Under the pieces are notes generated by a model. That model saw only the letters and a program-made list of their open reading frames with translations, was not told the DNA's origin and searched no databases. Both the position numbers and the translations under genes were made by a program. Positions 1 to 62,287 of a DNA stretch of 64,000 bases are shown here, piece after piece (the first letter of the stretch is position 1; each line of letters begins with the position of its first letter). The stretch is from Blepharisma stoltei ATCC 30299 (lineage: Eukaryota > Protista > Ciliophora), in contig CBFDEM010000046.1 of assembly GCA_965603825.1 (NCBI GenBank), positions 558,001-622,000 of the forward strand, written 5' to 3'.

Positions 1-1102
1 TTTTGACGTTGAGCACCAATGATCCTTCTTCTCTTCCATAAGACCCAAAAGCCATCCCTAATATAGTTTCTCCAATACTCAAAGAGTGTAATAGAACTTT
101 ATCTTTATAAAGCCTTATTTCTCCATTAGCTAATGCTACAAGTAGACCTTTGAATACACGAGCTCTTGTGAGCTTTAGCATTTCAATGCAGGAAACTTGT
201 TCAGGCATGTATAGAGTGTAAAGCTTTCTCCCTTTGATGTGGTAACAATGTACTTTTTGGTCAACAGATCCCACAAAAATGCTTCGGTCAATATTAATAA
301 GGCCTACTGAGTGGGTTTCCAGCTCTATGATGCTTGGCATCAGCTGCCCATTTTTTACTGTGTATATATTAGAATCCCTACAAGCCACAAGAATTCGATA
401 CTCACCACTAAAAAGTCCAGCAGTCGATATAAAGGCAGGGACATCTGGCAATACAACTTTTGTAATAATAGCTGAGCCTGTTTTATCTAAAACATACAAA
501 AACTTGTGCTCAGTCCCAATAACAAGCACTGATACTGCATTTTCTAGCTCTTGGTCTAATTTAAGCACTCCCAATGTGGTAATTGACGTATTTTGTACCA
601 GTGGAGTCAACTTAGTCGCTTCAATAAATTCCAGTCTTTCTTCATCTGAGTCATACGATAACAAATCCAAAGACCTATTACTTAGCAAACTCATAGATTC
701 TCTTAAAGAAGATAATCTTGCTATAGCTTCAGTTGGATCCATCCTGCTTTCTTTTAAAGCTTCCCATATAGAAACTTCATCAGGCGGAAGCTCAAGGTTT
801 GGCAATGTAAACTTAAAGAAAGGCCTCGAATTTTTGTAAATAAAAATAAATGAGCCAGACGCCACTGCTAAATTAGGAGGAGCGTCAATTTCTGAATAAT
901 AAATAGCCACTGCTGAAGGGACATCTAGTAACAAACTTTCCCACGCTATAGAAGTCCCACGGTAGACTCGGAGCTTCTTCTTTAAATCAGCGATTACTAA
1001 GTTGTACTCGCCGTCTGACTTTAAATCTCCTAAACACATGCAAGCAGAGGTTGCTTTGAGGCCTGCAACAGGGTCTTGTCAAGAGTTAGTCCAAAGTTCC
1101 AT
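1..1102 (-). CDS. BBS1: Bardet-Biedl syndrome 1 protein (BBSome subunit), 5' part; gene runs off the left edge
   Basis: Not in the ORF track. ATG at 1102 gives MELWTNSW(TGA 1079-1081)QDPVAGLKATSACMCLGDLKSDGEYNLVIADL...PNLAVASGSFIFIYKNSRPFFKFTLP...VLVIGTE, matching BBS1 N-terminal motifs. Confidence 0.9.
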
Positions 1103-1151
1103 TTTTTAAGAAAATATGAAAATACAGTTAAACTTATGCAGAAGTTGGTTA

Positions 1152-2858
1152 TTAATGGGCGTTTTTTCGAAGGCCTTTTCTGGTTCTCCTAGCAATTGGA
1201 CTGGAAAGATTGGTTTTGTGCTTAGGTTTGGATTTGAGAGGCTTTGGAGCTTGCTGGTTTTCTTTATTCTCTGTGTCCTCTTCTTTAATTTTTTGGGTAT
1301 TTTCTTTTATTTCTTTGATAAGTCCAAACTTTTCTTCAATTGGCTGTGGAGCATCTTCAGTTTGTATTGAAATTTCTTCTGTAACAAATGGGTTTAGGTA
1401 AATTTTTGGAATTGTGACTTCTACTATGGTTTCTCTTAAAGGGGATGTGCATGTATCAATACAATTGATATTTTTCTTTAATTTCGAAAGTTTGGAGGCT
1501 CACATTTCGTCCTTTGTTTTCATGATTTCATCATAGTTCTTTATAAGCATGTCTCTTGAAGTTTTATAGAGATCTGATTGTTTTGCAAGCATAGATTCAA
1601 CTTCTTGCGCGATTTTGGATCTAAGCTCAGACTCAAGCTCAAGCTCTCGTTGTTTAACATTTTGGAGCTGCTCTTGTGTTTTCAGCATTTCTTGTCTTTT
1701 AAGCTCTTCAATCTCTTCTTCTTTGGCTCGTAGAAGTTCTTCTAGTTCTTGCAGCCTTGCGATTTCTTGTCCTGGAACATTTCGGTGCTGTCCAAGTTTT
1801 GATTTCATTGGCTTAATTCCAGTTGTTATAGCTCCAAATTTCAAAACGCTAAGGGTTTCTTCAAAATCTTCTTTGCATTGATTAATATTGATAATTAATG
1901 AAATATTTTTATCTTCACCCATTCCAAAGAATTCTGAAAATATTTTGGTTAGTAAAGTGTCTCTAAAAGGGATCATGTCTTTTTTCCCTTTTGACTGATT
2001 GTTTTTGATAGCTTCCAAGCACCGGCCTAGTACACTTAAAGAGTTATTAATGTAGCTAGCCTCTTTTAATCTCTCTCCAACTGTATTAGCTCTTAAGGTG
2101 CGTTCTGCCCCAGCTAAATCTACAATTGCAAATTTGGGAGCATTTTCTCCTTCAAGCATTATCAAAAAAACTGAGTGGCTTCTTGAAGAAACTTGGTTGC
2201 ACGCAGTTTCCGCTAATTTCCTATTATTTAGCCCTAATCTTAGACAATCCATAGCTTCTGTAAAGGTTTGTATGCGTTTCTCACTGATTCCAATAATTTT
2301 CACATTAGAGCTGTCCTGCCTAACTTTCAAAGACTGTCTTTGTTCTTTTTTCGAATATTCTTGCAAAAGATCATAAACCCGATCATTATAAATTTCGAAA
2401 AACTGCACTTTAAAGGTTAAATTCCTATCAATTAAGTCTTTTAAAGCTCTGATAGTAATCCCAGGGTTTTCGTATGTCCCCATAATAGTATGAGTTTTAC
2501 CTGCGTTTGTAATTCCATAAGAAAATAAAAGCGCACTTTTCCCTTTTTCGACAAAATCATTGATAAGAGGATAACAAATTGTAGCTGCAACTTGCTCTTG
2601 AGTGGTGCATGGCCCAAGGATTGAAGTAAATTCAAATTGCTCTATTGCAGTTTCTGAGGCATGGGATGGAGGGTTGATCTTGAGTGAATGAGATGAGGTG
2701 ATTTCATAGATATCGGAAGGTTGAGAGGATACAGGGCGAATTCTGCAGAAAACTTTAATTGGGACGATATCTTCGGTATCTGTAATACTGTCTCGGTCTA
2801 GTGACTTTAATCTTTTGGGATGGCCTTCTTTGCTATCATCGAGCTTTCTTTTATACAT
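1152..2858 (-). CDS. Kinesin motor protein, kinesin-6 (KIF20/KIF23)-like, ~568 aa
   Basis: VFCRIRP, LLFSYGITNAGKTHT, SSRSHSVF, VDLAGAER, IPFRD motifs. ATG at 2858. Reading TGA 1500-1502 as Trp extends the ORF to ...SPIARRTRKGLRKNAH-TAA at 1152. Confidence 0.88.
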
Positions 2859-3750
2859 TTTAAAACACAAACCCGCTATAAAAAGGGAAGGATATTTTAG
2901 AGAAGATATTGAACTTAAAATTTTACAATATGAAATAAGTGAACTCAAGTAGCTTAAATAGAAATGAAAATATTAAGAAAATTAATACTAGGAAATTGTT
3001 TACCACTTATTCATTTAGTAGATTATATAAAAATCATTGTAATCTTTGCTGTAAGGCTTTCTGAATTTTCACATTAATTTAAGCTCCCAATAACCAGAGA
3101 ATAAATGTTTGTAGTTTATTTATTGCATATTTATAGATTTCTTTACTTTATATCAAAAATTGATAAATTCTAAGGAAATGAAAACAGAATGGAAACAAGC
3201 ACTTAGCATTATGTCTTCCTAAATTTAAATCAAATAGTATTTTTGACCAAAATTTATTTGGAGATCCTGCTGCTTTGCCAGAAATTAATAAGGAATTGGA
3301 GCATAACATTCTTCAATGAATACAGAGGATAAGCAGCTTATTTCAAAAATCGCTGGAGCTGTAATTAAAGCTTAGCAGACAAAAAAGACCTCAAGGATTA
3401 TAGGAGGAATTAAAAATATTGGAAAAGATCTATATGCTGTTGCAAAAGCCATCTTGAATTCTATAAATCGACGCTTCAAGAAGCAAGCCTATATTATTAA
3501 GTTGATCAATGCAAATTTCCAATTTTGACTAATAAATGACACCGCAGTCATCTATATCTAAAAAATCAATTAAGCAGTTCAATATACTAAATATTTCAAA
3601 AGCCTATGCACAATCAAATCGTTTTCTAATAAAAATTTTCATATGCATAAGAATGCTTCTTTCTTAAAAAATCCAATCAATCCATCAGTCTCTAATCTAT
3701 TACAAGTCAGGGGAAGTTTTAAAAAATTAAATTACCTATTCTATACTAAT

Positions 3751-13428: not shown

Positions 13429-14940
13429 ATGGAAGAAGAGAAAATTCATTTTAGTTTTTGGAAAAGAATCGAGAGCTCTAAAGGCATTTTTAAGCCAGGT
13501 GAACTTCTGGATCCTGAATCAGTTATTCTTAACAATCGTTTATTTATAACCGGAAGAGATTCAGAAAATAACCCAGTTGATTTAAGAGAATATGACTTTG
13601 GTACAATCTAATTAGAAAATGACACATGAGACGTTCATTCAGTCCAAGGCTTCCATCCCTGCACTGATGGCAATTCTACTATTTATTTGCTAATAATCCC
13701 TGACAACTCCGACTACAGATACCAAGTTATTGAATATTCTTTAGAAACCCTGACTGGCACTCTGATCGATACAACAGGTATCGCTCCAAAGAAAAGAAAA
13801 CCTACAGTAAGTTCTTTATATTTTCAAGGCTGTATTTATTTTTTTGGCGGAATGCAAATATATCGAGGAGATGCGACAGGGAGTTTTGTATATCGCTTAG
13901 ACTTAGAAACAAAAGAATGAAGCAATGTAGAATATTCAGGCCAATTCCCTGCTACAGTCCCTCATGCGCCACATACAGGTTGTAGATCAGGACACAGCAC
14001 TGTACTTGTAGGACACAAAGCATATATTTTTGGAGGGACTATGATAGAAGATTCTTTATTAAATGCTGAATGCTTGACTAGCTCAATTTTTGACAATTTG
14101 TAAGATATATACAGCAATACCAATGATTTGCATGAATTTGATATTTTGCAGTCGAGATGGAGCAAGATTGCGTATAAGCCGATAGCCTGCATGATACCAA
14201 CTATGACACAGCATGCAGCTGCAGCAAATCAACAATTTATGTATATTTATTATGAAGAAAAAATCTATCGATATGAATTTCAAACACAAAATTGTTATAA
14301 ATTGAAAAAAAGCTTAAAAGCTCCAAAATGCAAAGGCCAATGCACAATGCAATTAATTAATAATTACTTGTATTTGTTTGGGAATACTAATGAAGGAGCA
14401 ATGCTTTATAGGTTGAATTTAGGAAAAGGCTGGGTTTGGGTGCCTGGAGACACGATGCCAGACTATTCAGTAAGCTTTATTTAGAATTTCTTTAATCATC
14501 AGCCTACTTCAGACTTATTAGTAAAAGTTGGTGATCAAAAAATTTATGCCCATAAACAAGTTATGTGTAGGTTTTCAAGCTTGCTAAGAAGACAACTGAC
14601 TCCTGGGATTCGGACAATTTCTATTAGTGAATTTCCTTTTATAGTAATTAACATGCTTGTGGAGCAACTATACCAAGATTGCCAATTAGAACTGCCTAGA
14701 GAATTATCACATTTTTTGCAACTTTACAGAGCAGCACATTGGTTAGGCGTTGAAGAAATCGTGATGAGGTGCCAAAGTGCGTTAAATGTAAGTCCAGCTA
14801 ACTTAAGAGCTGTTATTGATTTAGTTGGTGACATCCCTTCAGCAAGACAAAAGTGTTTGGATTATGTAAAAACACATTTAAAGGAATCTGCTATGCTCCT
14901 TGCTCCTGAGCAACTTTCTGAATTGCTGCAGAATTTATAA
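13429..14940 (+). CDS. Kelch-repeat plus C-terminal BTB/POZ protein (LZTR1-like architecture), ~488 aa, 3 introns
   Basis: Kelch GG motifs (YFFGG, YIFGG) with Trp encoded by TGA (YDFENDTW 13627-13629; LDLETKEW 13918-13920). BTB start SDLLVKVGDQKIYAHKQVM. Introns 13601-13615, 14100-14114, 14470-14484. Confidence 0.9.
13601..13615 (+). other. 15-nt intron GTACAATCTAATTAG
   Basis: GT..AG, A10, removes in-frame TAA and restores kelch YDFENDTW. Confidence 0.9.
14100..14114 (+). other. 15-nt intron GTAAGATATATACAG
   Basis: GT..AG, A10, removes in-frame TAA and restores FNTNDLHEFD. Confidence 0.9.
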
Positions 14941-15684
14941 GAATGATCTTATCATAGTATTTGAATTAAACAAATTTAGTTTTATAATTTATATGAGAGG
15001 TATTAACACTCAAAAGATTATTTATTATGAAGAAAAAATCTATCGATATGAATTTCAAACACAAAATTGTTATAAATTGAAAAAAAGCTTAAAAGCTCCA
15101 AAATGCAAAGGCCAATGCACAATGCAATTAATTAATAATTACTTGTATTTGTTTGGGAATACTAATGAAGGAGCAATGCTTTATAGGTTGAATTTAGGAA
15201 AAGGCTGGGTTTGGGTGCCTGGAGACACGATGCCAGACTATTCAGTAAGCTTTATTTAGAATTTCTTTAATCATCAGCCTACTTCAGACTTATTAGTAAA
15301 AGTTGGTGATCAAAAAATTTATGCCCATAAACAAGTTATGTGTAGGTTTTCAAGCTTGCTAAGAAGACAACTGACTCCTGGGATTCGGACAATTTCTATT
15401 AGTGAATTTCCTTTTATAGTAATTAACATGCTTGTGGAGCAACTATACCAAGATTGCCAATTAGAACTGCCTAGAGAATTATCACATTTTTTGCAACTTT
15501 ACAGAGCAGCACATTGGTTAGGCGTTGAAGAAATCGTGATGAGGTGCCAAAGTGCGTTAAATGTAAGTCCAGCTAACTTAAGAGCTGTTATTGATTTAGT
15601 TGGTGACATCCATTCAGCAAGACAAAAGTGTTTGGATTATGTAAAAACACATTTAAAGGAATCTGCTATGCTCCTTGCTCCTGA
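14244..15684 (+). repeat. Direct 666-bp duplication: 14244-14909 and 15019-15684
   Basis: Offset 775 nt. I saw one mismatch (C14837 vs A15612, Pro to His). The intron is retained in both copies. Confidence 0.95.
14470..14484 (+). other. 15-nt intron GTAAGCTTTATTTAG (identical copy at 15245-15259)
   Basis: GT..AG, A10, in-frame TAG; removal joins the kelch region to the BTB domain. Confidence 0.9.
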
Positions 15685-15733
15685 CTCCCTGGTACCTGGC
15701 TGGCTCTACATAATGTGAGGAAAAAACATATAA
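14993..15733 (+). CDS. Putative truncated paralog (last kelch repeat plus BTB) formed by the duplication; may be non-functional
   Basis: ATG 14993 (MRGINTQKI) is in frame with the duplicated segment; intron 15245-15259; new tail DSLVPGWLYIMW(TGA)GKNI-TAA 15731-15733. Confidence 0.45.
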
Positions 15734-22069: not shown

Positions 22070-25000
22070 ATGAATGAATCATTTCTACGCCAAACTAGAT
22101 ATTTAGTAACCTTCAAACCTCATATTTCAAAGCATAGCGTTGGACTATTTGATGAGACTTTGGTAAAGCCTGGAGCACCAATTTCAATATATCGTTTGGT
22201 TTTTACTTTTGAGGTGAAATATCAGCATGATCGAGATCACAACTTTGATTGATTTATAAGGCGAACTTTTTGTGAGTTCCAAGAGCTTCATCAAAACCTG
22301 CTGAAAGAAATATCTAGAGGAAACATGCTGACAGTGCCTCTGTTTCCGGACGGTGAACAATTTTTATCATCAACTCCAGATATACAGCTTGAATATTTAG
22401 AGAACTATTTACTTGCATTAACAGGTCAAATTGATGCATGCAATAATCCTGAATTTTGAAGCTTCTTAGAAGTCAGCGCACTCTCATTTGATGGGGCAAG
22501 CAAAAAGCGTAAAGAAGGCTACGTCCTTAAAAGAACAGGAGGAAGAATTAGTAACGAAAGAAGGTGCTTTAACTGTTCTAAGCATTTTAAAAGACTTCAA
22601 AAGCGCTGAATGATTATCAGAGATAATATGGTTGGGTATTTATCAACTCATATAAGAGATACACTTCATGAGGTGCTTATGTTCAAAGGGAGATTTGAAG
22701 TAGAATATGGGCTAAAAGAAACAGGATATGAAGATGGCATTAGAATTATTACGCTTAGAAGAGATTTTATATTCAGAGCTGGGAGCATTTTAAAAAGAAA
22801 TGAATGAGTAGAGTCTATTCAAGAAGCTTATAATCAGTCAGAATGGCACAATGAAATCATCAGATATGAGTCTTCTTTTCCAGTGAGGAATAATAATTAT
22901 GTTAAATGATATATTGACGCAAGATTTTATTTCAATGAAGTCTACGAAACTTTAAAACGTGCCCAACGTGAAGTTTTCATATCAGACTGATGGCTAAGCC
23001 CTGAACTTTACTTAAAAAGGCCTTCCAAAAAGTTTGATTATTCCCAAGTATGTGAAATCTTAGGAGCTTTGGCAGATAGAGGTGTAACCGTTTATGTTCA
23101 CGTCTATAAAGAAGTATCTTTAGCGTTAACCATAAACTCTTTACACACAAAAAACACTCTTCAGCGGAGAAACCCAAACATAAGAGTTGTTAGACACCCA
23201 CACCGATCTGCAGTCGGTGGAGAATTCCTTTGAACTCATCATGAAAAAATAGTCTGTATTGACCAAGAAATTGCATTTATAGGAGGGCTTGATTTATGCT
23301 ATGGTAGAATGGACACAAATGAGCACCTTTTAACTGATTTGCAAGAGCCTTATTTTTGGAATGGCATTGACTATTCTAATGTCAGAATCGCTGACTTCTC
23401 AGAAGTGGCAAATCATGAAAGAGATATTATTGATAGAAATACGCACCCAAGGATGCCTTGACATGATGTCGCTTTAAAAGTTGTAGGAAAAGCGGCTGCA
23501 GATATAGGAATGCATTTTATTGAGCTGTGAAACCATGTGATGACTGATATAACTGGAGCATATTATAAAAATAAAGACTTACTGCAGCCTAACTATTCTA
23601 ATAACCGTAGAGGTGGGAAAAAAAGATCAGTTGTAGAAATGAGTAGGCCGATATCAGTAAACAGCTCATTATCATTTCTTAAAGAAGAAGCCAAAGAAGA
23701 GCCACAGAGTATAAGTGAAAGCTTGGAAAGTTCTTGCCCAGCGATGCAGAGAAGCAAATCCCATGGATTTCCTGAAAATTTGTTTCAAGAACAGATAAGA
23801 GAAAGAGGGACTTTATCATTGTCAGGGCCATCAAGAAGGATTAATGTTGCTGAACTTGATAAGAAAATTGAGGAAGAAAACAATCAGTCTATTGATACAG
23901 CAATTCATATAGATAGGACTCCATTGGATTCTAACACAAAAAAAGCTGTCAATAATTTAATTTCAAAAGGAGGAGGAATAATTGAAGAAAGCACTGACAG
24001 GAAAATGAGTGTCGTAGGTGACCAACTTACAGTTGTAAGTCCGCTCAGAAAAAACACACAAAGTATAGTCCTTAGCCCGATAACTGACCATCAAAGACAA
24101 ATCCGAGAAAAATTAGAAGCAGAAGATGAGGCCAAGCTACAGAAAGAACTCGAAGCTGACCAAGAAGAAGGCGACGAAGCATTTTCAAAAAATCTGCTCC
24201 ACCCAAAAATGAAAGAGCTCGGACAAACAGGTACATGTGAATGCCAGGTATTAAGAAGTGCAGGCTTATGATCCTTAGGCCTTGAGCACACTGAGCATTC
24301 AATCCACACCGCATATCTAAATTTAATCGACCAAGCTGACCATTTTATTTACATTGAAAACCAGTTTTTCATATCCAGCACTGCTGGAAACCCAGTGAAA
24401 AATCAAATTTCTCAAGCCTTGGTTGAAAGAATTAAATGCGCAGCTAAAAGAAAAGAAAAATTCAAAGTAATTGTAGTCTGTCCTTTATTGCCAGGCTTTG
24501 AAGGCTCCATAAATGACCCTGGAGCAGCTGTATTGCGTGTTCAGCTCCATTGGGAGTATCAAACGATATGCCGAGGTATAAATTCTTTATATGAGCAGCT
24601 AAAAAGTGACGAAAATATTTATGATCCTTTAGAGTATATACGATTTTATGGGCTCAGAACTCATGATATGCTCAACGATACCCCAGTCACTGAAATCGTA
24701 TATGTCCATAGTAAACTTATGATTATTGACGACGATATTGTATTAATGGGCTCTGCTAACATTAATGACAGAAGCCTATTAGGGTCAAATGATAGTGAAA
24801 TTGCTATGATAATTTCAGACCAAAAAAAGAAACAAAGTATAATGAATGGTCAGCCAAAAAATAAATCGTGTTTTGCTTATACGCTGAGGATTTCGCTATT
24901 TAAAGAAATCTTAGGAATTGATGATGAAGCGATAATAGAGGACCCGCTGAGTGAGGCGTTTGATGAATTAATGTGATCGACCGCGTCAAGCAATACTGCA

Positions 25001-25222
25001 TTGTATAAACATATATTTAGATGTTATCCGGATAATGAAATTTTGAGAATTAGTGATATTGTGGGTTTTGAGTCTCAGGCTCAGATGAATGATTATGTGG
25101 TATTGAGGGAAAATTTCAAAGGGTTTATAGTAGATTTCCCAATGGATTTCTTGAGGGATGAAGATTTGAGGATTTCGATTTTTCATAAGGAATATTATAT
25201 CCCTGATGTCAATTTTGTATAA
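22070..25222 (+). CDS. Phospholipase D (PX-PH-HKD-HKD type), ~1050 aa
   Basis: One frame with 11 TGA=Trp. PX ([14 protein letters not shown]), [70 protein letters not shown] (W* = TGA). Confidence 0.95.
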
Positions 25223-29372: not shown

Positions 29373-32300
29373 TTATATTTGATTTCTTATTAAAAAATAC
29401 GATTTTATATCTTTTACCATCGTATTAACATGGATTTCCTGGTTAAGCTCAAACCCAAAAATTCCAGGCTTATAAATGTTCACAATCTCCTTTGTAGCTT
29501 CACTTACTGAAATTCTCCCCGCGACTCCATTGCTTTCTATCTTATTCGCAATCAATACATCATTTCCATAAATATCATACCTAATAATATTCGTACCCAC
29601 AACTCCTCCAATAATATTCCCAGTATGCATCCCAATCCTCATAGCCAGCTGCAGCGAGTTTTCCCTATTGATTTTTTCAATAACCTCAATCATTGATTCT
29701 GCAAAACAAATCATATTATAGCACTCTTCAGCTGAATTTCTCTCTTTATCATCCCTATATCCCATTGCAACATAGCAGTCTCCTATAGTGTGGACTTTAT
29801 AAGCATGATGTTTTTCGCACATTTTATCAAAATTCCCAAAAAGATTAGAAAGCATCCCTATAATAGCAGTCGGAGTCTCATTAGAAGATCATAAGGTAAA
29901 GCCTACAATGTCAGCATAAATTAAGGTTACTTGACTTAAAGAATCTACAATAGTATTTTCTTCTCTTAAATTATGATATACGTGGAGAGGCATCATTTTT
30001 GTTAGGAGATTATCAGTGTTTGTCAGTTCTTTTTGGGAGTATTCTTTAAGGGCGGAAAATATCCGAAGATTTTTTTCTTTATTATAGGTGATAAAGGCAA
30101 GAATGGAAAGAAAAATTAAAGAAAAAATGAGGGATTGATAGAAAATATTTGAGGGGAAAATTATGATATGGCATAGTCAGATTGATCATACTAGAAGTAA
30201 AGAAATAATTATGTGTTTGTAGAATAAGCAGGAACATTGGGTCAGCAAAAGCATGTAGAAATAAGCATAAGCTTCTTCTGTGGCAAATGAAAAAGATTCT
30301 TCACTGTCAAAATCAATGAGTGATGAGGCTATGATGGAGAGTATATAGATTAATTGTAACAACCACGCAAAATATTTATTTTTGTAAATGTTTCTATTGA
30401 GAAAAGTAAAACTTCCAAATATTATAATTTGGAAAAATGCAAAAATCACCATTTTTATACGATAAGGAAATTCATCAGAATCTAAACATCCTAATAAATG
30501 GATTCAAAATAATATGAAATTTGCTATAACAATCAGAATAAAAGAGTAAAATATGATTGGTTTATAAATTTCAATAATCTGCAGCCTAAGCTCAGTTTCT
30601 TTTTCAGTTTCTTTAAAGTTGCATGTGAGAAAATGCATTTCTTCTATATTATCTGTATCTTCCCTCCTAAACAATTGAGAAGTTTCCTCTAAATCCAAAC
30701 TGCTTAAAATAACTGATTTTCTTTTTGTTTCAGTCCTTATTGAATTATCACTAAAACTTGCTCTATTGGCTACAGAACTAAATGAATAATTCGACATAAG
30801 AAAAGCCCTTGGAGAAGGGTTATTTAAATAGCTCTGAGACTGAATATCGTCGACTTCCATGATTTTTATATGCAGGGTATTCATCATCCCTTTTCCTTTT
30901 ACATATACTGTTTGTTTAGAAAAAACAAGTCCTGATTTATCATCTAATAAATTGTAAGAAGCTTCAGAAATTTGGATCATAGATGGATCTGCCAGTGTAG
31001 AAGCCATTCGGCTGGCTGTATTAACGGTATCTCCTACTAATAAAAACTGAGGTTTATGGTCACCTACAACTCCTGCAGTAACTGAGCCGCTATGTATGCC
31101 GATTTTTACTTTTAATGAGACTCCTTTTCTTAGGTATGTTTTTTCTGCAGTCTTAAGTATCCCAATCCCCATTTCAATCGCTCTCCTTACATGTGATACA
31201 GAACTAAAGCATGGATCTAATTCAGTTTCACTGTCTTTTAGCCCCGCACAAGCCATATAAGTCTTTCCAACAGTTTCTATTTTCGTAGCCCCAACCATGT
31301 CGCATACTCTATCAAATTTCTTATAAACTTCATCAAGAAACTCTGTTAATTCTTGCAGCCCAATTCCTGATATAATTTCTTCAAAATCGCAAATATCGCA
31401 AAAAATGACAGAAACAATTCCTTGATTTTCTGAAATATACCGGACTCCATCCTTTACTCGATTCCTTACAAATTTCGGTAAAACGCAATTTAATACCATT
31501 TTAGATTTTTCAACATCTATCTCTACCTTTTTAACAAGGGTGTATTTTTCACGAACTGATTTTTCAGTAAAATAGCCAACTAATCCTGAAAGAATGATGA
31601 TTGAAATATGGATTATAACGTATTCGGATGCGTAAAGGATAATTTCTTTTGGATCACTATAGTGATGAAGTAGTTCATATAAAATGCCACCTAAAACAAA
31701 TAGCTCAGAAAATAATAAAAACATGGAATTTCAGAATCAATTAAAACTTAGGCCAATAAGAAATAATGGAGGGAGGATAAGAATTTCTCCAGGAATGAAA
31801 GTGTCAAAAAATATGGAGCAGACTAAAAATAAGGTGATATGTAAAAAATAAAGTAATAGGATTAACTGATTTTGGCATTTTTGAAATATAGCTGTACAAG
31901 TAAAGAAAATAAAAATCCCATGAACCCCTAATAAAAAATATTCATATACTTCAATTCAAGTTGTATTAGAATTCATTATAGACTCATAAATTACTAATAA
32001 AGTAATCACCAGAAAAAGATTGATAAAAAAATAGCGGCAATTAAAAATATTTTCTTGCAATTTTTCTAGTTGATACTCAGTCTCACGAGTCTTTGATTTA
32101 TATTTTAGTAATAAGCTACTTACATCAAAAGAATCATAAATTTCTTTGGTTTTATTATTTTCAGTAGAAATATAAATACTTCCAAGGCGGCCATTGAATT
32201 CGTTTATCCTTGGTGAGAAATTAAGGTTCGAGAATTTTTTAAAAATTCCTTGTTGTAAATAGTTGCAAAGGCTAGGAGAAAATACTTCAAATCATGCTCT

Positions 32301-35300
32301 ATAAAAATGAAAAATAATTGCAAATAATAAAGTAAGCATAATTATCCAAATAATGTAACTGATTGAATTGCTTATCATTTGAAAGGCTCCATAATTCAAA
32401 AATTCATAAACTTGAACTGAAGGAATAATTCTGAAAATAAATAATAAAACAAATGAAGAAAATATAGAAAAAACTGTTCATATATTGAAAGATCAAATGC
32501 TTTTTATTATAAAGCATAACAAACAACTAAATAGTGCAATTATCACCATAATTTGGTCTAACTCGAAGCTATCATTATATCCTTGTTTATTAATAATTCC
32601 ACCTAGTAAATAAACAAATGAGATTGTAACAATTGCTGCAATAAATGAGCAAATGACAGCTTTTATCATAATTTTATTAGAAAAATGCATGTTTTTGATT
32701 CCTTCTATATAAATTTGTGGAAAATTTATTATTCTTGCATCAGATACAAATTCATCATAAATTCCAACAGTAATAATCAAAATGCTAAAAAAAATATAAT
32801 TAAGACAAAAAATATCATATGCCTCAAGAATTGAATTCCCCGATGATCCAACACAATTATCATATAAAAAAATACTAAAAAATACTGTCACACTTATAAA
32901 AACTGAAAAAACCACAGTTCTCGAAGAATTTATGTAGATTTTGTATCCATCTATCAAAATCAAATCTTTTAGTTGAGAAAAACTCTTGATATTAATATGG
33001 CTTAAATTTTCAGCTTGATTAGCTGCACTTGTATGCACACATACACCTATGTGTGCAGCCTGCATCATCCCAATGTCACTATTACCATCTCCCACAGCAA
33101 GAATCATCGGCTTATATGAAACATTTTCTTTTAATAATTTTACGACCATTGTTTTATCGTCTGGAAGTAGCGAGTGAAAAGTGACGACTTGAGCTGCACA
33201 TAAAAGAGCAATAAAATATTTTCGGTTTTCTTTAGTGCTTAATCCATATTCTAATCCACTTCGGTCTATAGATAAAATAAAATAAATCGAATTGCAATTA
33301 AAATTTGAAGATAGAAGTGAATGTAGCTCTAATGGCTGAAATAGCTGGGGATCAACTGATTTAAAGATTTGAAGAGCATTTGGTCTTTGGATTTGGTATC
33401 GATCATTTTCTAACTCAGGGCTATTTTGTGATTCATGATTGAACATTATTGGCTCTGTATACGCATAATGTAGCATTCTAAAAGAATCTGGCGACTCTGT
33501 AGGACTCTGAGTCTGCTTATTATCGTTTTCCTTATGAAAAATAGAAGAGTTTATGTGTCTTATTAAATCCCTCTTGCAGGCTATTTCTGAAGAATAATTT
33601 GTCAATTTTACAATCCTAGCTTCTTTTTCAAATAAATTTGCTGACAGCCCTGAAGATATTGTGCTTTCTTCACAATCCCCACTCAGCATCCAAATTTTTA
33701 TTCCTGCTTTTGTTAGTAACGATATCGTTTCTTTGGCTCCCTCTTGAATTTTATATTCAAGACACACAACGCCCAGATACTCTAAGTTTTGTTCTAATTC
33801 GTCAAATAAGTCTTCAATTCTTCCTTCACTATTAACTGGTGATAATTTCGCATTACTATATGCAAATTTAAATTGGTTATATTCTTCTAGGGTTAGGATT
33901 TTACAGCCCATATATATGGATTTTACTCCAGATAAATCTTTCATAAGCATTTTATCGTCAAGGTACTGCCTTTGTTCAGAGGTTAAATCTAAAATTCGTA
34001 TCATTTTTTCTCTGGGGCCTTTTACATATAGAACTGCGACGGAATTATTGATATCTTTGACAACTATTCGGGTTTTATTGGTTGCGGAGTTATTTTGGGC
34101 TGCAATTATAGGAAATCTTTCTTCAGTTCCTAAAACATTTAGCAGACATTTTTTGCTGGTTCTTCTGATCAGCTTAAAACCGAGTTTTCCGCTAGTTTTT
34201 ACTAATGCATGATCATCTGCGGAAGTTGAAAAATAGCTGCAGTGCTTTTTTATTGAAACTTGATTGCAAATAGCCATGCATACCATGTAATGATAAAGAA
34301 TAGATTTTCGATCTAATGCTCCTAAGAAATCTTTCCTCAGCTTTGAAAAGTTTATCTTGGAGTTTCCATTTGGATAGCTAAAGCATCTATTAAAGCATGT
34401 GCTTTCTGTAAAAGCGTTGCTGTCCACTCTTACAAATTCATGGACATCATTCAAATAATCATCGTCATGCTTAGTATAAATGCTATTATTAATTATGCAT
34501 GCCTTTACTGAAAGATCACTAGTCGTGATTGTCCCCGTTTTGTCTGCTAATATATATTCTATTTGTCCTAAGTCTTCAATAATATTTGTAGTGTTGAAAG
34601 TAATTGATCCGTTTTTCTTTTGTATTTTCTTGGCCTGGAGAAATCTAACGATTTCTAAATTCAAATAGATACAGATTGGCACAGCTTGGCACAGCTGTAC
34701 GAGCAAATCTTGAAATAGCTTGAGTAAATTATCATCATATTTCAAACCATAGTATAAATAATTAAAAAATAAGGTAAATATCAGGACAATAGATTCTGCA
34801 ATTATGATAAGAAATACATACCTATTTAATGTTTTTTGAAAGCGGGATATATGTTTTGTATAATTTAAATCACTTATTGGGCTTGTCCCTTCTTTTCCAG
34901 TGTATATAACCAATCCAAAAATTCATGAGGTTTCAATGATTATTGACCCTCTTTGAACAAAATTATTATTAGATAAATTTATTCTTTTTGGATTCTGTTT
35001 AAGTTTGAAAAATCCTGAAAATTCTTTAAATTTAAAAGGTGCAGGAACTTTTACTTTAGCTTCAAGCTTGCACAAGTAATTTCCAGCTTCAATATGGTCA
35101 AAAGAATTAATAACCATCTGTGAGTCATTTATGGGTTTTTTAATTAAAATGCATTTTTCTCCAATAATTTCACTCGCATCAACATAACATATTTGTTCTT
35201 CTTCACCAATAGAAAGAACTAAGATATCAGCAGGGACATATTCTTTCTCAGTTACCAAAATAATATCTCCGACTTGCAATTTTTTTCTTTTTATTTTAAT

Positions 35301-35672
35301 AAATTCGTGCCCATCTCATTTATTGCAAAATTGATTATTAATACTTTCATCGTTTAAATATCTTTTAAAGTCTTGGTATATATCAGAAAACATGGTAAGC
35401 GATAATAATAATGCTAAAAAAATGAAAGGAAATCATGGGTAAGTTTCTGATCAGATAGAATTATATATGGATGCAAAAAGAAAACAGATGCCAACTGGAC
35501 TGTGAAACTGTGCAAAAAGACTTAAAGGGAGAAAGGTTTTGAGGGTATAGCGTGAAGTTTTTATTTTGTTGCTAATGAATCCGCTTAAATGGGAGCTCGG
35601 GACATTAATGATTCTTCAATTTTCTGGGCGTTTTTCTTGGCTAATATCGTTTAGCTTGGGGAGATTTTCCAT
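29373..35672 (-). CDS. Alveolate-type P4-ATPase-like / guanylyl cyclase fusion, 2099 aa
   Basis: Single 6300-nt frame with 15 TGA=Trp; gaps between track ORFs translated by hand with no TAA/TAG. P4 motifs NKIKTSRYTLKTFLP, VPADIL, EDLGQIEYILADKTGT, GIKIWMLSGD, LAVGDG. Two TM blocks and two class-III cyclase domains (KIETVGKTYMAC..GDTVNTASRM..KGKG; YADIVGFT..KVHTIGDCY..RYDIYGNDV). Confidence 0.93.
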
Positions 35673-37017: not shown

Positions 37018-37608
37018 CTAAGTATTCATCTGTCTTCTCCAAGTAACCATAAGTTCTTTGAATTCTTTTTTTGTTAATATATCTTGGGAGTTCACAGTTC
37101 TGAATCTCGCCCTTTTTCATCTGCTTCTATTAGTTTCTTTGATTTCGTCATATTTAATTCTTGAAATAAGCTTAATCTCGTCTTCTAATATTTCGCATTT
37201 CTTTTTTGTTCTATTTAATTTGGATTGTAGTTTGATATTTGAAGCTTGGTTAATATTGGATAATACACTATTTATTTTATCTAATCTCTCTTGTTGCTTT
37301 GGAGATACAGAAAATAGTTCAGTGGCACTGCATGAATTATAATTTATTTTGAATGCTGAAGGTAATTGAGGGTCTTTAAGGAAAGGAATAAAAGAGCCTT
37401 GACGAGATAAGCCTTGTACTGTATGAGAAGATTCACGTGTTAATCTTCTGCTTTTAAATGTTAACAATTCATTTCTTGAAGTAAAAGCATGGGGATCAAG
37501 ATTGAGAAAAGCATCAGAGGAGGAACGACTGTGAAAGAAAGGCAAAGCTATTTTTGGTGAATTATTCTTTGAAGAAAGCTGGGTTTTTGTATTTATTGAC
37601 GCTTTCAT
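37018..37608 (-). CDS. Hypothetical basic protein, ~196 aa
   Basis: TGA 37117-37119 read as Trp extends to ...WRRQMNT-TAG at 37018. Confidence 0.65.
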
Positions 37609-42652: not shown

Positions 42653-44239
42653 TTAAATTCAAGCTTTATTAAATATAGAGGTTTTGATACCTAACAAAAG
42701 ATCTTCATACTCTTGACATTTCTTATGCCCTCCACCATAATTACAGAATGAACAATAATTTGACTTGCATTTTTTGCACTTTATTTTGTATGGCCTCCAG
42801 TGTTGTGGATGCAGCTTGGTCCATGAAAATGCTTTGCATATTCTGCAGACTATTTTTTCTTGGTTTTCTTTAAAAAGTTCACGAAATATAGCTTCTTTTT
42901 CATCAATTCGATGAGACTTATTTTCCATAGGAGCTATCATAATAGGAGTTTTGTACTGTTCAGGCAGAATGTCTTTACATTTTTCTAATTTTGTTGATTT
43001 TTTTTCCTCTTCAAATTGTTTTATTGGGTGGATCTCTTTTTTGTGGAATAGTTTACTTAGAATTTGTATTGAAGGTTCATAGTTAGTGTCAGAAATTTCA
43101 TTTGGATAACTTGAAACCTTATCTGAGTTGCAAGAAGACGCAATCTCTAGCTTATATAATGTAGAGCTAGATGATTGAGAGGATAAGTAATTGCTTGTCG
43201 GGTTTTGGGGATCACTTGGTTCAAAATCATTTAAATCTGGATTATAAGCTTCAGAATCTTTCTTAGATATATTTCTTTTTTCAGAATCAGAAGAAGTCCT
43301 CTGTGACTCTATAGATATAGTTTCACTTTCTGCAATACTTTCTTCAGATTTTTTATAGCTTTCTTCTTCCTCTTCTTCCTCAATTTCATTTGTTTTATAA
43401 TAATTATGTCGAAATTTATTAATACTCTGGAATTTAGCTAACCAATCCCTAACCTGCTCAATTTTTCATCTTTTTGGGACTATTGGATCTAGCATACCTG
43501 ATAATAAAGTTATAAAGCTTTGTGGGCACCAGCGGCGAGAAATAATTGCATTTCGGATTTCAAGATCTATATCTGATTGAATAGATATTCTTTCAAACGT
43601 AACCATTTCATAAAATGTCATACCTAATGCTCAAATATCATCAGAATCTGGAGACGAAATAATGTGTTTCATGTACCTTCTTGTTTTTAGCTCAGGCGAC
43701 ATATATGGGACTGTCCCTAAAATTGTATGGAACGTATACGGCAGTTCTTCTTTTTCAGAAAACTTTGATATTCCATAGTCTCCAAGCCTCAAATCTCCGT
43801 TTTCATTAATAAAAATATTCTGCGGCTTGATATCTCTATGCCAAATAGAATTTATATGCAGAACTTCAATTACATCAGTTAAACAAGAAAAATAATACAC
43901 TAGGGCTTCTACAGAAAAGTGACGATTTTTTGACCTTTTTTCTTTTATTTCTTTCCTTAAGTCTCCTTTTATGCAATCCTCCATTAGGATGTAGAATTGG
44001 CTATTTTGATAGACTCCTGATGCATAATATTTTACTGTCCATGGATGTAGTGAATTTACCCTAATCATCATTTCTGCTTCTTCTATTCCTCTGTTCTCCA
44101 TTGATAAATATCTTTTCATAACTGCATTCTTTGGGAAATTTGATTTATGAGATCAGTTTGTAAATAAGACTTTGCCTATTTCAACCTTAGATTTTCTGAG
44201 AAGATCATCTTTAATCTCAAAGTTTTTGTAATACTCCAT
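42653..44239 (-). CDS. Ser/Thr kinase (NEK-like) with acidic linker and C-terminal Cys/His (IBR-like) zinc domain, ~528 aa
   Basis: AVMK, HRDIKPQN, DYG, GTVPYMSPE, DDIW(TGA 43631-43633)ALG; C-terminal CRIC..CKKC....CSFC.....HKKC; frame open by hand to TAA 42653. Confidence 0.85.
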
Positions 44240-45361: not shown

Positions 45362-47284
45362 TTATCTTTTCTTTTTGAATAAATTTTTACGCTTCACTGG
45401 AGCTAGCTCAATGTTATCCAGCCACCCAATCCTTATATCTTTTTTATCCGAAATTTTTTGTTTTTTTGTCGTAGTTTTAATTTTTCTGTCAGAAGAAAGC
45501 TTATTTTTCAGCGGCAATTCATATTTCTCTTGGATGCTCTGTGGGATTTCTTCTCCTTCTTCTAAATCCTGCGGCTGCGTAGCTTGTGTAGTTTCTTGGG
45601 TTGTGTTTTCAATTTCCATCTCCATTCCTTCCTCTACCACAATTTGGAAAATCGACGTAAAGCTTTCCGCAATTTTTTGGCATTTTTCTTTCATTTTTTG
45701 GCTTGGCTCTAATTTATTTTGTGGAGCAAAAATTGAAAGTTTATTGCTTGGTATTAGCTTTACAGTGAATTTTTGTTCATACAAAACTGGCCTATGCGTC
45801 TCAATTTTCTTTTGTTTCTGCACAGGCTGTACAATCTTTGGTAGCTTTTTAACAGCTTTTTCGCTTTTTTTCGCAAGTGTTTTTTTAATTATTTCAACAA
45901 TTGTGTTCGCTTCTTTTTGAAGAATGCTGCTTTGTTGATGCACTTTGACTAATAACTCTTTTACAGTCTGTGGTGGGTCTGTTGCCAAGCTAATTAATGT
46001 TCTTCCTTTCAAAATAAAATTCGGATTTTCATCTTCTCTTCTAGCTACCTCATCTCTCCAATTCGCTAATGCATCTAGTATACTTTGCTGCTGAGGATTT
46101 AAAAATTCAATACCTCTTTTCAATGCTACCCACTTTAAGTCTTGTTTTTCGTATCTTTTTAAGCAAATATCTCTGCTTTTTTGGAAGACTTCTCGTGCTA
46201 GCTCTAATGGGTGGAGTCTTAGCTGTTGAGCTTTTAGAGAGAGCTCGTTTTTTAGCACGTCAAAAATATGGAGCAAATAGTGAGTGTCCATTCTGGCATA
46301 TTTTATCATTTCTGGGGATAATGGGCGGACTCTTCAGTCAGCAAGTTGGTAGGATTTGTCAGTTTTTACACTGCAGATTGTTTCGAGTAGATATGCAAGC
46401 CCAAATCTCGCGTACATTAAAATTCTAGCAGCTTGGCCAGTATCGAACATATTCACGATGTAAAGTTTGAAATCTTTTTGCATCCAAGGGATATCTGAAT
46501 CAGCGCCATGCAACACTTTTATTATTGCAGGATTAGTAAAGACGCCTAGAAGTTTTGGCATCAAATCCCATACTTTTAAGGTGTCTATAATATAATCTGT
46601 ATTTCTCGTTGATATCTGCATAAGGCACACAAACCCTTGATAAGTCCTAAAAGAATGATGCTCTAAATCAATCGCTATTTCTTTAGCTTGTGACAGCTCA
46701 TTAAGCATCCCATAAAACCCTTCTGGGTTTTCCACCATAATAAGTGAGACTTCTTCAAGTTCTTTGAATGGCTGGACTTGTGAAGGCTCTAATTGCCAAA
46801 ATTCTTGAGCTAAGGATTCTAATTCATACTGGTAAGGGTGCATCCCTTCACTATAAACTTCTAAAGGAACCATTGCATTTGGCTTTTCGTCTAAGCTTGG
46901 CACGAATGGGGATTCACTGTTATCAATTGTGTGTTTAAAAATTTCTTGCGGTTTAGGAAGCTCATATAAGCTGAGCTTAGATAATGCAAGATCAGGCACT
47001 GCTTTAATGCCTGCTTTATTATCAAGTCCTGCTGCTACGTATTCTAAGCATTGGTCAGCCGCTTCTATAATATCGTCATACTCTGTGCTTTCAGTCTGAG
47101 GAGTCACAAACCTGACTAAATTAGATATCAAGTCACTTATTTTCATTTGAAGATCTGTGGTTTGAGCTTCATAGGACTTATCAGTTAAGGCAAAAGCAAG
47201 GTTTTCGCCTGTTGGGAGCTGATTTGAGATATTTGCAGCTTTGACTACAGTCTGGAGTAAGTGTGGGATATTGCAATATTCCAT
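45362..47284 (-). CDS. RRP6: Exosome 3'-5' exoribonuclease RRP6/EXOSC10 (DEDD exonuclease plus HRDC), ~640 aa
   Basis: EIAIDLEHHSFRTYQGFVCLMQISTR, LHGADSDI, DKSYQLADW(TGA 46334-46336)RVRPLSPEMIKYARMDTHYLL, WRDEVARREDE. Confidence 0.95.
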
Positions 47285-49271: not shown

Positions 49272-49892
49272 CTAAATCCCACACAAAGCTCCATCAATAT
49301 ACTCTCTTTGAACGATATCCAAATTGCTATTAATAATACACCCAGGTCCATGCCACTTACCATTCCTAAAACTCCCATAATAAATGCTTCCATCCTCACA
49401 AAATTCTCTTCCTGAGTCTCCATGAGGAACTCCTTCTTCATTCAATTCTCCACTATAAATATTCCCATTCGGAAGCACAATAGTCTTTACTTCTTCTGCG
49501 GGGACATCTGAATCTCCATTTAGGCTTTGTCTATTTCAATTAATTTTTGTATTTTCTTCTAATTCCACAAATTTCTGATAAAGCTGTTCCATTCTCTCCT
49601 TAATCCACGGGACAATCCATATTTCTTTTTCCTTATCCTTCAAATAAATACAAAAGCTATTCCCGCTTTTCACCCCAACCCTAAAATTGTTCAGCTGCAG
49701 CACCTTATTAAACTCTATTTCACTAATCAACTCATTAATTTGTGTGTTCGGACTCAATCTGTTATGTGCCTGATACTGATCTTCAAAGCATCTCATACAG
49801 GTCGACTCTAAATCCAATATAAAAAACCTCGTAATATGCTGTTTTGTCGATTTCGAGACTTTCATAAAACAGCCCATATAGTCTTCAACCAT
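49272..49892 (-). CDS. PH-like domain plus MORN-repeat protein, ~206 aa
   Basis: YMGCFMKVSK...RFFILD N-terminus; TGA 49536 joins it to MORN repeats (YSGELNEEGVPHG, YYGSFRNGKWHGPG); ends TAG. Confidence 0.78.
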
Positions 49893-53192: not shown

Positions 53193-54389
53193 TTAATGTC
53201 AGGAGTTTGTAGTGTTTGGCTTATGGAAAGACTCTCGTCTCACCTTTTTTGGAGGCGACGTACATCTAGTCGGTGAAGGGCTTCTATTAATTTTCATTGA
53301 ATTAAACCTCCTATAATGCCTGCTATTAGTTTTCGTTGAAAAAGTCATAGAAATCTTCGGCATTTCCGCTTCACTTGGGACTAATTTTTGAACGTTTTTT
53401 TGAGGATTTTTTAAAGTTTCTATATAAGAGTTTTGCAGTTTAATTCCAGAATTTGTGATTAAATAGCTTGCATATATGGTAGCTTGTAAAAGACCTCGGA
53501 GCTTAAGTTTGTCATTAAATTGGGTAATTCTTTCTAAATACGTAAGCGGGGGCTTTTTATCAGCTTCTCTTGTAACCCAAGGGTGTCTTAACGCTTGCTC
53601 TGCTGTGTATCGTTGTAAAGGATTCACATGGGTAAGTTTCAGGAACAAATGTTTAGCTGAGTCACTAAAATTTGCAGGGAATTTTCAGTGAGGGTTTTCT
53701 AGCTTCCTTAAATAAGACCTGACGCTTTCTTTTGGCTCCATTAATGGGTGTTTCCCAGCTATCAAAATATACATTAAAATCCCACAGCTTCATATATCGA
53801 CTGGCTTTGAGTATAATTTTGACCCTGTTTGTTCTGGAGCCATATAAATGATAGTCCCTACACTTTCATCTAAGCCTGGACCTATATAGTCTAAAGCCCA
53901 TTGAGAACTTAAGCCGAAGTCTGTCACTCTGACTGATTGTAAAGAATCATCAGCAAACATAATATTTTCTGGCTTAATGTCGCGGTGGATGATATCGTGC
54001 TGGTGCAAGTAATGAACTGCACTGAGTAAACCTCGCATAACTGTGGCAGCATCATTTTCTGAGAAAGCACCATTAGAGATCCTTGACTCAAGGGTGCCGC
54101 CTTTGAGCAATTCCATTTCAAGCATGATATTTTGAGGGCTTTCATTTCACTCCTTCATTTTCACAATGTGAGGGTGATCTAGCTGGCTAAGAATTTTGGC
54201 TTCTGAAAGAAATTCAATTGCTTTGGATTTTGAGATGGATTCTTTGTTTAGGACTTTCACTGCGACTTCTTCTCTGTGCATTTTATTGATGCATTTATAA
54301 ACTTTCCCAAAAGATCCACTGCCTATTTCAACGCAGTCTTTATAATACTGCTGAAAAAGTAAATCTTCAACTGACTTGTCCATCTCCAT
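53193..54389 (-). CDS. CAMK-group Ser/Thr kinase, ~398 aa
   Basis: IGSGSFGKV, VAVK, HRDIKPEN, DFG, YMAPE, PVDIW(TGA 53790-53792)SCG, HPW; four TGA=Trp; ends TAA 53193. Confidence 0.92.
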
Positions 54390-55905: not shown

Positions 55906-56820
55906 ATGGTTGAAGACGCAAATGGAACTAATTTACAAAATTCTGCCAAACGTCATTGTATTATTGACTCCGAAGATGGCTTGATCATAAATCCTCAACT
56001 TGCACTAACCAAACAAATTTACAAGTCTTTTGGGAGTGCTACAACAGTTGAGCTTTATAATGATACAATCATAGACACTCCAGTAATAATTAAAAGGCTT
56101 GACAAAAAGTTATTATTTACTGAAGCCCAAAATGAGTCTGCCAAAAGAGAGCTTGAAATCCACAGATCTTTAAACCACCCAAATATTGTCCAGCTCTATG
56201 ATGGCTGTGAAACAAACGATGAATTTCTATTTGTAATGGAATATATCCCAAGACACGATTATTTCACTGAAAAAATTGAAGTGAATAATAGACCTTTTAA
56301 CTCTAAATCGGACGGAGGAATTGACAAGCTGAAGTCTTTTACTTATGATATATTAAAAGGTCTAGAATATCTTCATGATAACCACATTATTCATTTAGAT
56401 CTGAAGCCAGCAAATTTAATGGTAAAACCTGTGACGCAAAGCAATGAATATCCTCTTGTCAAAATCGGAGATTTTGGGCTTTCCAGAAGGTTCGGCGAAG
56501 AAGGAGGGGTTATTATTGATCAGAAATGTGGAACTGATAAATATATCCCTCCAGAAGTCAGGAGTGGAGCTTGAATAACCCCTGCAGTCGACATGTGGTG
56601 CTTTGGGCTCATTTTGCATACTTTGACTGTAGGCTTTGCGCCGTATGTTCTGAAGTGGAACCCAGGGCAAGAGATTCCTTTTAACCCTCGATGGTGGAAG
56701 AAATATAAAGATACAGGTCTGACTGATTTAATATCTAGCTGCTTAAAACTAGATCCAGCAGAAAGAATCACAGCAAAAGAAGCCTTGAATCATAAGTGGT
56801 TTGATTGCAGACTGGGTTAA
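55906..56820 (+). CDS. Ser/Thr protein kinase, ~304 aa
   Basis: VIIK, HPNIVQL, HLDLKPAN, DFG, CGT.KYIPPE, DMWCFG; TGA 56572-56574 joins two track ORFs. Confidence 0.9.
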
Positions 56821-56858
56821 TTAAGCTGTTATAAATACATTAAATATCGTTATTTATG

Positions 56859-57596
56859 CTAAGTGCTTCTTGCTAATATTGAATTACAATTCGAACATCT
56901 GTGGTATCTCATTTGGTTTATCCACATAGCCCCTCTGCAGCACTCTACCAGCGAGCTCAGGGCTTCTAAAATCGATATAGGGAACGCCGTCCTATTTTGA
57001 ATTTCTACCGTAGTATGCACATCTAACTGGCATTTATTGCAAAAAAGAGTGCATGGCAAAAATCCCACCACAGGCAGCCCTTCTGGGCTTTTTTCTTCAT
57101 TTTTTCGATCCATCGTGCTTTCTTTCGGGTTTTTAGTAGTCATCTCCGAAGTAATGATATCTGTTTTCAGCTTGCTGGCGTTAAATTCTGTATATTCTAA
57201 ATCGTCGATTTCTGAAATAATTATCTGTTTGGAATCACAGTCAGCTGGCAGCATTAAGTTTTCTATATGCAGCTTGGTTTTTTTTGAGATCGATTTTTTG
57301 CAGTTAAATAAATTGGTTGGAAAAAGCCCTACTGGGTGAGATAGGACCCTCCTATGTTTTTTCTTGCCACTCGCAGTTAAATGGCAGGTCGCTGGAAAAA
57401 TGCTTTTTAAGGACAGTCCTAAGTCTTCAGAGCCAAATTCAAAGCTAAGGCTATTGACATTTTCGTCTCGATTTATCGCAGTGGAGTCATCGAGTTGGTG
57501 CCTGTCTGAGTCTGGCCTTTCGGCGTCTGAAATTTCAAGCTGAGAGCTGGGGGTTAGTGTGGAAGTGTGGGAATTGAATCTTTTATGATGATACAT
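56859..57596 (-). CDS. LITAF-like zinc-ribbon domain protein
   Basis: C-terminal FCNKC..VHTTV..hydrophobic stretch..CC..HRCSNCNSILA. Confidence 0.8.
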   Translation of the reverse strand: MYHHKRFNSHTSTLTPSSQLEISDAERPDSDRHQLDDSTAINRDENVNSLSFEFGSEDLGLSLKSIFPATCHLTASGKKKHRRVLSHPVGLFPTNLFNCKKSISKKTKLHIENLMLPADCDSKQIIISEIDDLEYTEFNASKLKTDIITSEMTTKNPKESTMDRKNEEKSPEGLPVVGFLPCTLFCNKCQLDVHTTVEIQNRTAFPISILEALSSLVECCRGAMWINQMRYHRCSNCNSILARST

Positions 57597-57734
57597 TTCT
57601 TATAACTATTTTTCATTAATTTCAAAATCTGATTGAAGAAAAGGGTGGGCTTCTAAGAGCTTTCTTTAATAGAGAAATATAGGATATTATTAAAACATTT
57701 AATTACCCAGAAATTATCAATTAAGATAGGCAGG

Positions 57735-59909: not shown

Positions 59910-60197
59910 TATTATTTCAATACAAATAAACCACTCTCTTTTAATCTATCTAAATAATAAGCAAAAAGAAAGTAGCCTGAAGTCTTAATGCATCTTAACT
60001 AAAGCTGTTTCCCATGATTAATTACTTAAATACTTGCTATTGGCAGCCATTTCAGCCAGAATAAAAGACTGATTTTGTTTTCAAAAAAGTCAGCGAAGGA
60101 GCATTTTGCAAATTAAAAACCCAAAGTCAAAATTTTATAAAAACTTACGCTAAAATTACGCTGAATAAACCATAATCAGCCAAGAAGTTTGTGAAAT

Positions 60198-60668: not shown

Positions 60669-60923
60669 TTATTTAAGTCGTTTGAATCCTTTTGCATAAG
60701 ACATTTTTCAAGTAAAGCAAATTAACAGCAATCAGGGGATCAGAATTTTAATATAAATTATGAAATTTTTAGATATTTGATTGGTTTTGAAGCTTATATA
60801 ATTAGTTATGGACCTATATTTCTTGAGTTTGATTTTTGTTTTTTCTTAGCCACTCATTAAAAAATTATTTAAACCAATCAGCCTTGCTGGAGAAAATATT
60901 AAAAATTGTATTATGCTTATTAA

Positions 60924-61271
60924 TTAAATTTGACTTTCAATTTGACCTCTCATAGAAATACTTAAGAAAATAGGTAATCTATGCTTTGATACAATTGTGT
61001 GTTTGAACTGGCATCTTTCACCATAGGTACAACACCCAAGCTCTGAGAAGTGCTTGCATTCTTTTGTGCGGACGCCGACTTTGTCTCTTAGTTCCTCTTT
61101 CCCATGGGCAAACGCACAAGCTTCTCCAAAAGGACAAAATCCATTTACCCAGTTCTTACAAATTTCTGTCTTGAATTTTACTTGAAAGTCTTGCTCTTTG
61201 TGCTCTTTTAAGGCTTTGGGGCTTTCTTTTTTGAAATGACTTTGAAGATCTCTTTGATCACACTCTAACAT
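60924..61271 (-). CDS. Tandem CCCH zinc-finger (TIS11/tristetraprolin-like) RNA-binding protein
   Basis: KFKTEICKNW..GFCPFGEACAFAHG and RTKECKHF..GCCTYGERCQFKH. Confidence 0.92.
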   Translation of the reverse strand: MLECDQRDLQSHFKKESPKALKEHKEQDFQVKFKTEICKNWVNGFCPFGEACAFAHGKEELRDKVGVRTKECKHFSELGCCTYGERCQFKHTIVSKHRLPIFLSISMRGQIESQI

Positions 61272-61567
61272 TTATTTTTTATTAAGGCTAGACCAGCACT
61301 GTAAAATATGTCCAGTTAGCGGTTCAAAAAAGTAAAAGACTGTGTTAAGAAAAAGCTCAGGAATTTTTAAATTCACCAGCACCATAGCCTTGCAAAATCT
61401 GAAGTTTTTACTAAGTTTTCCCTCCTATAAAAAAACAAATTATTTTCAAATTTATTGCAATCCTTCTTTCCTTTACCTTTTGCCTCTCATAATTTTCTAT
61501 TTTGCTTAGACTCAGGAAAAATAATTTCTTATTTGTTTCTAAATATGCCATTATAGATCTCACTTAA

Positions 61568-62287
61568 ATGAGCAGCTTAAATCGCTCGACGATGCTAGGA
61601 AAGGAAAAGAAAAATATACATCTTAAAGAGCCTCTTTTTTGGGCAATATCTGGCTCAATTACTTTTTGCATCTTATTTACAGGGATATTGTATGGGTGTA
61701 TTTTTAGTTTCAGCTGTGCAAGCTATTTTCCTACGATTTCATATCTCGCTACTTTTAGAAGCCACGACAGGTGAATTGTATTTGGCATCACTTTTTACTC
61801 CACCTTAATTCCTCTATTATTTATTTCAGTAAAAACTAAACTTTCTGCTTATCTTACATGACTGACGAATCTTATAGGACTTGCTGGGTGTTTTTTGATA
61901 ATAATTACAGGCGTTGTCGATGAGGTTAATGGTCTTTATTTCATGCCTCTGGATAAAGCCCATCCTTTTCTAACTTTATTTGGGTATTTTTCTTTTGCTT
62001 ACTGAATTCATTCAGTTCTTAAAGCTTTTGAAAGTATTCAGCTTGAATTTTCAGAAAGATTTTGATTACTAAAATGCAAGAAAACAGTGATGGCTATTCA
62101 TGTTCTTTTCGTAGTCACTGGTTTCCAATGGCATTTTGCCTATACAATTTATTCGAATTTTCTAGTCAACGAAGTCGTCGAAGCATTGTGTGAGTGAAGC
62201 TTAATTACACTAGCGTTAAGTTTGCCATATCAAATTTCCAGGATAACAAACACAAGTATCAGCTTGACTTGGCTAGCAAGAAAATAA
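61568..62287 (+). CDS. Frag1/DRAM/Sfk1-family multi-pass membrane protein, ~239 aa
   Basis: FPTISY after TM1 and EALCEW(TGA) before the last TM; five TGA=Trp; ends TAA 62285-62287. Confidence 0.8.

Follow-up and report, generated by a model that had tools for sequence, protein, structure and literature searches.

This analysis concerns the nuclear genetic code of the ciliate Blepharisma stoltei ATCC 30299, as seen in a window of 64,000 nucleotides (the whole stretch of DNA analysed; contig CBFDEM010000046.1, positions 558,001 to 622,000). The window is gene-dense, has a guanine-plus-cytosine (GC) content of 33.7%, and contains no tRNA or Rfam family and no telomere repeat. Its genes include a PX-PH phospholipase D (PLD) gene, which provides the best test, a P4-ATPase/guanylate cyclase fusion, two protein kinases, an RRP6-like exonuclease and a kelch-BTB gene (Table 1). 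The window is part of the B. stoltei macronuclear genome, in which UGA encodes tryptophan (Trp, W) and the only stops are UAA and UAG (together, UAR).

An earlier note on this stretch had proposed the same code from the letters alone, citing in-frame TGA codons and three TAG stops. All eleven cited codons are present as placed: the five TGAs on the plus strand and the three on the minus strand occur with the codon and peptide context given, and the three TAGs lie on the minus strand.

In-frame TGA codons and the encoded residue

When only TAA and TAG are taken as stops, open reading frames of at least 150 codons cover 81% of the window, versus 63% under the standard code, and 20 ATG-to-TAA/TAG frames of the window hold 62 in-frame TGAs. 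It is true, as the earlier note had pointed out, that frames ending in TGA continue in frame to TAA or TAG; this, however, holds for any frame and is no evidence by itself.

The identity of the encoded residue was derived from homologue alignments with X placed at each TGA, comprising 39 metagenomic PLD loci, 119 P4-ATPases and 11 kinases. In conserved columns (at least five homologues and 70% agreement), 7 of 11 TGAs coincide with Trp, as against 11 of 1,176 other codons (p ~ 2 × 10-11, Fisher test), and the commonest codon at Trp columns is TGA. The proposed assignment of UGA to Trp, with UAA and UAG as stops, is borne out. The kinase set (11 divergent matches) and the P4-ATPase set are distant and contribute little. 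The Euplotes code likewise has sense UGA and UAR stops; there, however, UGA is cysteine and is read by a cognate tRNA-Cys(UCA), whereas the homologue columns of B. stoltei give Trp, and UGA as cysteine is therefore ruled out.

The stop-free pieces of the PLD gene give one PX and two PLDc matches in Pfam, and match human PLD1 and PLD2. At nine of its eleven TGA sites the homologues have Trp more often than any other residue. At the three PLD sites among those that the earlier note had described as family-invariant Trp positions, the homologues indeed have mostly W; the TGA at 23528 has W in 20 of 21, and a PLD paralogue of the same organism has TGG at the position of TGA 22988. The DIW columns of the kinases are weakly tested, with six divergent homologues that have Y (three), W (two) and F (one), and therefore rest on Pfam continuity together with the DxW motif of kinase subdomain IX. 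For the RRP6 site the sole support is Pfam continuity.

Hand counts across the genome gave about 104 TGAs versus 12 TAA/TAG codons inside 134 kinase matches, and 20 versus none inside 150 WD40 matches; the 12 TAA/TAG codons are probably 15-nucleotide introns. Long frames (n = 106, ~250 kb) end in 90 TAA and 16 TAG codons. Since TAA and TAG are scarce inside the kinase matches, absent from the WD40 matches, and end the long frames, a reassignment of UAR is rejected. At the EQW tryptophan of the release factor eRF1, two paralogues have TGA and the third has Trp. A is the next base for 46% of the TGAs, compared with 36% of the TGGs (p = 0.045), an excess that agrees with the bias toward A after UGA (52.1%) reported for Blepharisma (supplement, bioRxiv 10.1101/2023.10.09.561518, hereafter the 2023 preprint).

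Table 1. Coding features of the window, with the in-frame TGA codons and stops discussed in the text
Feature	Position	Strand	Remarks
PX-PH phospholipase D gene	22070..25222	+	1050 codons, 11 in-frame TGA, TAA stop
TGA at first W of DWWLSPE (PLD)	22988..22990	+	W in 24/25 homologues
TGA directly before first HKD-type motif (PLD)	23231..23233	+	W in 19/28 homologues, TGA in 3 more
TGA in RMPWHD motif (PLD)	23459..23461	+	W in 23/31 homologues
P4-ATPase/guanylate cyclase fusion	29373..35672	-	2099 codons, 15 in-frame TGA, TAA stop
Protein kinase	42653..44239	-	4 TGA, including DIW (43631-43633) and one two codons before TAA stop
Protein kinase	53193..54389	-	4 TGA, including DIW (53790-53792) and one two codons before TAA stop
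RRP6-like exonuclease	45362..47284	-	Single TGA (46334-46336), splitting the exonuclease domain
Kelch-BTB gene	13429..14940 (approximate bounds)	+	TGA at 13627 and 13918
TAG stop directly after C-terminal LITAF-like domain	56859..56861	-	zf-LITAF-like match ends at residue 244 of 246
TAG stop	37018..37020	-	AT-rich sequence with more TAA downstream
TAG ending MORN-containing frame, probable stop	49272..49274	-	From context

Source genome and standing of the code

The assembly comprises 41,464,486 bp in 64 contigs, and the published macronuclear genome of B. stoltei comprises 41 Mbp (66% AT) in 64 telomere-to-telomere sequences, with introns of 15/16 nucleotides (PMC9942806). The main eRF1 matches B. 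stoltei CAG9313497.1 exactly, which confirms the earlier attribution to a Blepharisma-type heterotrich, and the first 140 residues encoded at a second locus match BSTOLATCC_MAC11380. The tiny introns that had been anticipated are also represented in the window, by candidate 15-nucleotide GT-AG introns in the kelch-BTB gene. Assembly statistics, eRF1 sequence, code and 15/16-nucleotide introns are all the same as those described with the nuclear code of B. stoltei ATCC 30299 (PMC9942806; bioRxiv 10.1101/2021.12.14.471607), and no difference was found.

A new lineage with a new reassignment is ruled out, because the genome is that of B. stoltei itself and its code is published; the proviso of the earlier note, that another lineage would mean a new reassignment, does not apply. 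The code has already been described for B. stoltei as UGA = Trp and UAR = stop (NCBI table 4; PMC9942806), and UGA = Trp was predicted earlier for B. americanum and B. japonicum (PMC4967479). Whole-assembly codon inference with PORC, which is similar to Codetta, has already been run by the authors of the B. stoltei work, and the tRNA and eRF1 features described below are already contained in the 2023 preprint, which is based on the same assembly. The B. stoltei genome has to be annotated with UGA = Trp (table 4), as otherwise the kinases, PLD and RRP6 look broken.

The small-subunit (SSU) rRNA genes of the assembly are present in at least 12 full-length copies with near-identical scores, which lie internally on 11 different contigs. 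They are thus spread over contigs and not located on one separate rDNA molecule.

Decoding of UGA and alternative explanations

The genome contains six identical tRNA-Trp(CCA) genes, in which A27 and C43 are unpaired, resulting in a 4-bp anticodon stem. The main eRF1 has an altered recognition loop, KSSNIKS, and alanine at the position of yeast residue 67, a numbering counted from NIKS; the other paralogues have alanine and serine at this position. In total there are three eRF1 paralogues, with 62-73% identity, and a Pelota-like gene. The 2023 preprint, whose deposited tRNA-Trp(CCA) sequence does not differ from this one, describes the same set of eRF1 paralogues for Blepharisma and proposes near-cognate decoding through a 4-bp stem.

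The code with UGA as Trp, read by a near-cognate 4-bp-stem tRNA-Trp(CCA) in competition with a weak eRF1, is very probably the explanation. Judging from the literature, the tRNA would read UGA as a near-cognate codon and would outcompete an eRF1 with weak UGA recognition. The few mRNAs that carry a selenocysteine insertion sequence (SECIS) element are the exception, with UGA read as selenocysteine.

Decoding of UGA by a tRNA-Trp(CCA) with a 4-bp anticodon stem was reportedly described by Kachale et al. in 2023, and B. stoltei likewise has the unpaired 27:43 position, the CCA anticodon, and Ala67 in its main eRF1. In contrast to Blastocrithidia and Condylostoma, which reassign UAA and UAG too, B. 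stoltei keeps both as plain stops. This retention makes Blepharisma a clean system for testing near-cognate decoding by a 4-bp-stem tRNA.

Several points weigh against this explanation. The 4-bp-stem mechanism was reportedly tested in Blastocrithidia and Condylostoma, not in Blepharisma, and among ciliates Ala67 is neither a necessary nor a sufficient feature (bioRxiv 10.1101/2023.10.09.561518). The search for tRNAs with a UCA anticodon relied on a pattern and gave no more than background (73 matches versus 151 in the control), and only four of the 73 matches were examined, of which one is tRNA-Sec, one is tRNA-Leu and two are not tRNAs. No proteomic or ribosome-profiling test of UGA decoding was found in the cited literature.

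The same code might instead be served by an RNA with a UCA anticodon, either the published tRNA-like(UCA), maybe charged by a second tryptophanyl-tRNA synthetase, or an edited tRNA-Trp. The supplement of the 2023 preprint describes a tRNA-like RNA with a potential UCA anticodon, expressed, CCA-tailed and conserved among Blepharisma species, as well as two cytosolic paralogues of the synthetase. However, C-to-U editing does not exceed 0.1% in 172,929 tRNA-Trp reads (2023 preprint), and tRNAscan-SE and ARAGORN detected no UCA tRNA besides tRNA-Sec (supplement, 2023 preprint). The sole UCA tRNA confirmed in the present analysis, among the four matches examined, is tRNA-Sec. Decoding by a cognate RNA is therefore considered improbable.

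An ambiguous UGA, read as Trp inside genes while terminating some mRNAs near their 3' ends, as in Condylostoma and the karyorelicts, is very unlikely. Such a partial ambiguity, if true, would place Blepharisma between the standard heterotrich code and that of Condylostoma, as an intermediate. Both window kinases do end in TGA-x-TAA (42661 and 53201), and in a third frame a TGA lies five codons before TAA (39757); moreover, the eRF1 of B. japonicum shows weak in vitro recognition of UGA, and a depletion of UGA sets in 25-30 codons ahead of stops (bioRxiv 10.1101/2023.10.09.561518). In the 106 long frames, a small sample that includes some antisense shadow frames, the published depletion was not reproduced, and TGA makes up 4 of the 530 codons in the last five positions, no higher than the 5.1 per 1000 inside genes (p = 0.28). 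The authors of the 2023 preprint observed Trp decoding only, and no genuine UGA stops were found in B. japonicum transcripts (PMC4967479). The ambiguous codes of Condylostoma magnum and the karyorelicts (UAR = Gln/stop, UGA = Trp/stop; PMC4967479) share with B. stoltei the internal UGA = Trp; they have no cognate UCA tRNA-Trp, and in B. stoltei none was seen among the four pattern matches examined or in the published tRNA predictions. Unlike them, B. stoltei has no in-frame TAA or TAG in its long frames and no sign of UGA as a stop.

It is hardly credible that the TGAs are genuine stops, due to pseudogenes or a faulty assembly, or that tiny introns or RNA editing take them out: the 15/16-nucleotide introns of this genome can hold in-frame stops, but the in-frame stops are nearly all TGA and stand at Trp columns, an enrichment that contradicts this reading, and seven DNA runs contain 98-100% of the sampled words. 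In addition, contigs of a putative RNA run, whose RNA status is a guess and whose differences are shown only in part, cover PLD positions 22081-25176 gap-free with no listed change at any TGA, which makes it unlikely that splicing or editing removes them.

A single-copy tRNA-like gene on contig C33 (near 56570-56621) has perfect acceptor and T stems and an irregular anticodon arm with TTCCAA. It scores 46 bits with the Rfam tRNA model, and ARAGORN cannot assign its anticodon.

Other genes of the window and related loci

In the P4-ATPase/guanylate cyclase fusion, the Pfam families E1-E2_ATPase, PhoLip_ATPase_C and Guanylate_cyc match on separate pieces. Only one of its five well-covered TGA columns is supported, namely that at 35435 with W in 110 of 114 homologues, and the remaining sites are in poorly conserved columns; the homologues are nearly all fish ATP8B2, at ~24% identity. 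The fusion is an architecture known from alveolate guanylyl cyclases. In the kinase at 53193..54389, the pieces split by TGA correspond to positions 2-64, 68-180 and 228-263 of Pkinase. The RRP6-like protein matches DNA_pol_A_exo1 positions 3-140 before its TGA and 144-172 after it, together with PMC2NT and HRDC.

The candidate introns of the kelch-BTB gene are three in number, at 13601, 14100 and 14470, and exon by exon its Pfam matches are weak for kelch and clear for BTB. A near-identical direct repeat of ~668 bp (14243-14910 and 15018-15685, 775-bp spacing) doubles the BTB half of the gene, intron included, and is due either to a partial duplication of recent date or to an artefact of the assembly.

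The three TAGs fared differently as gene ends. The one at 56859 lies two residues past its LITAF-like match, which is itself below the curated cut-off, whereas only their context makes those at 37018 and 49272 plausible.

Two kinds of metagenomic PLD homologues were also observed. In Ga0310697_10243161 (338-1726, plus strand; GC 24%), a single long frame contains some ten TGGs and neither TAA nor TAG, and its only TGA coincides exactly with the invariant W of the DWxLSP motif. This one codon points either to an error in the sequence or a pseudogene, or to a rare UGA = Trp in another low-GC eukaryote. The JGI contigs Ga0066843_10007766 (257-3424, plus strand) and Ga0066834_10022917 are 99.5% identical, with a GC content of 35%. 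The former aligns over ~1000 residues; its TGAs stand at Trp columns, and most of its TAA and TAG codons fall on Gln-like ones. To judge from these columns, TAA, TAG and TGA all seem to be read as sense in this pair, as in Condylostoma, the karyorelicts or Plagiopyla.

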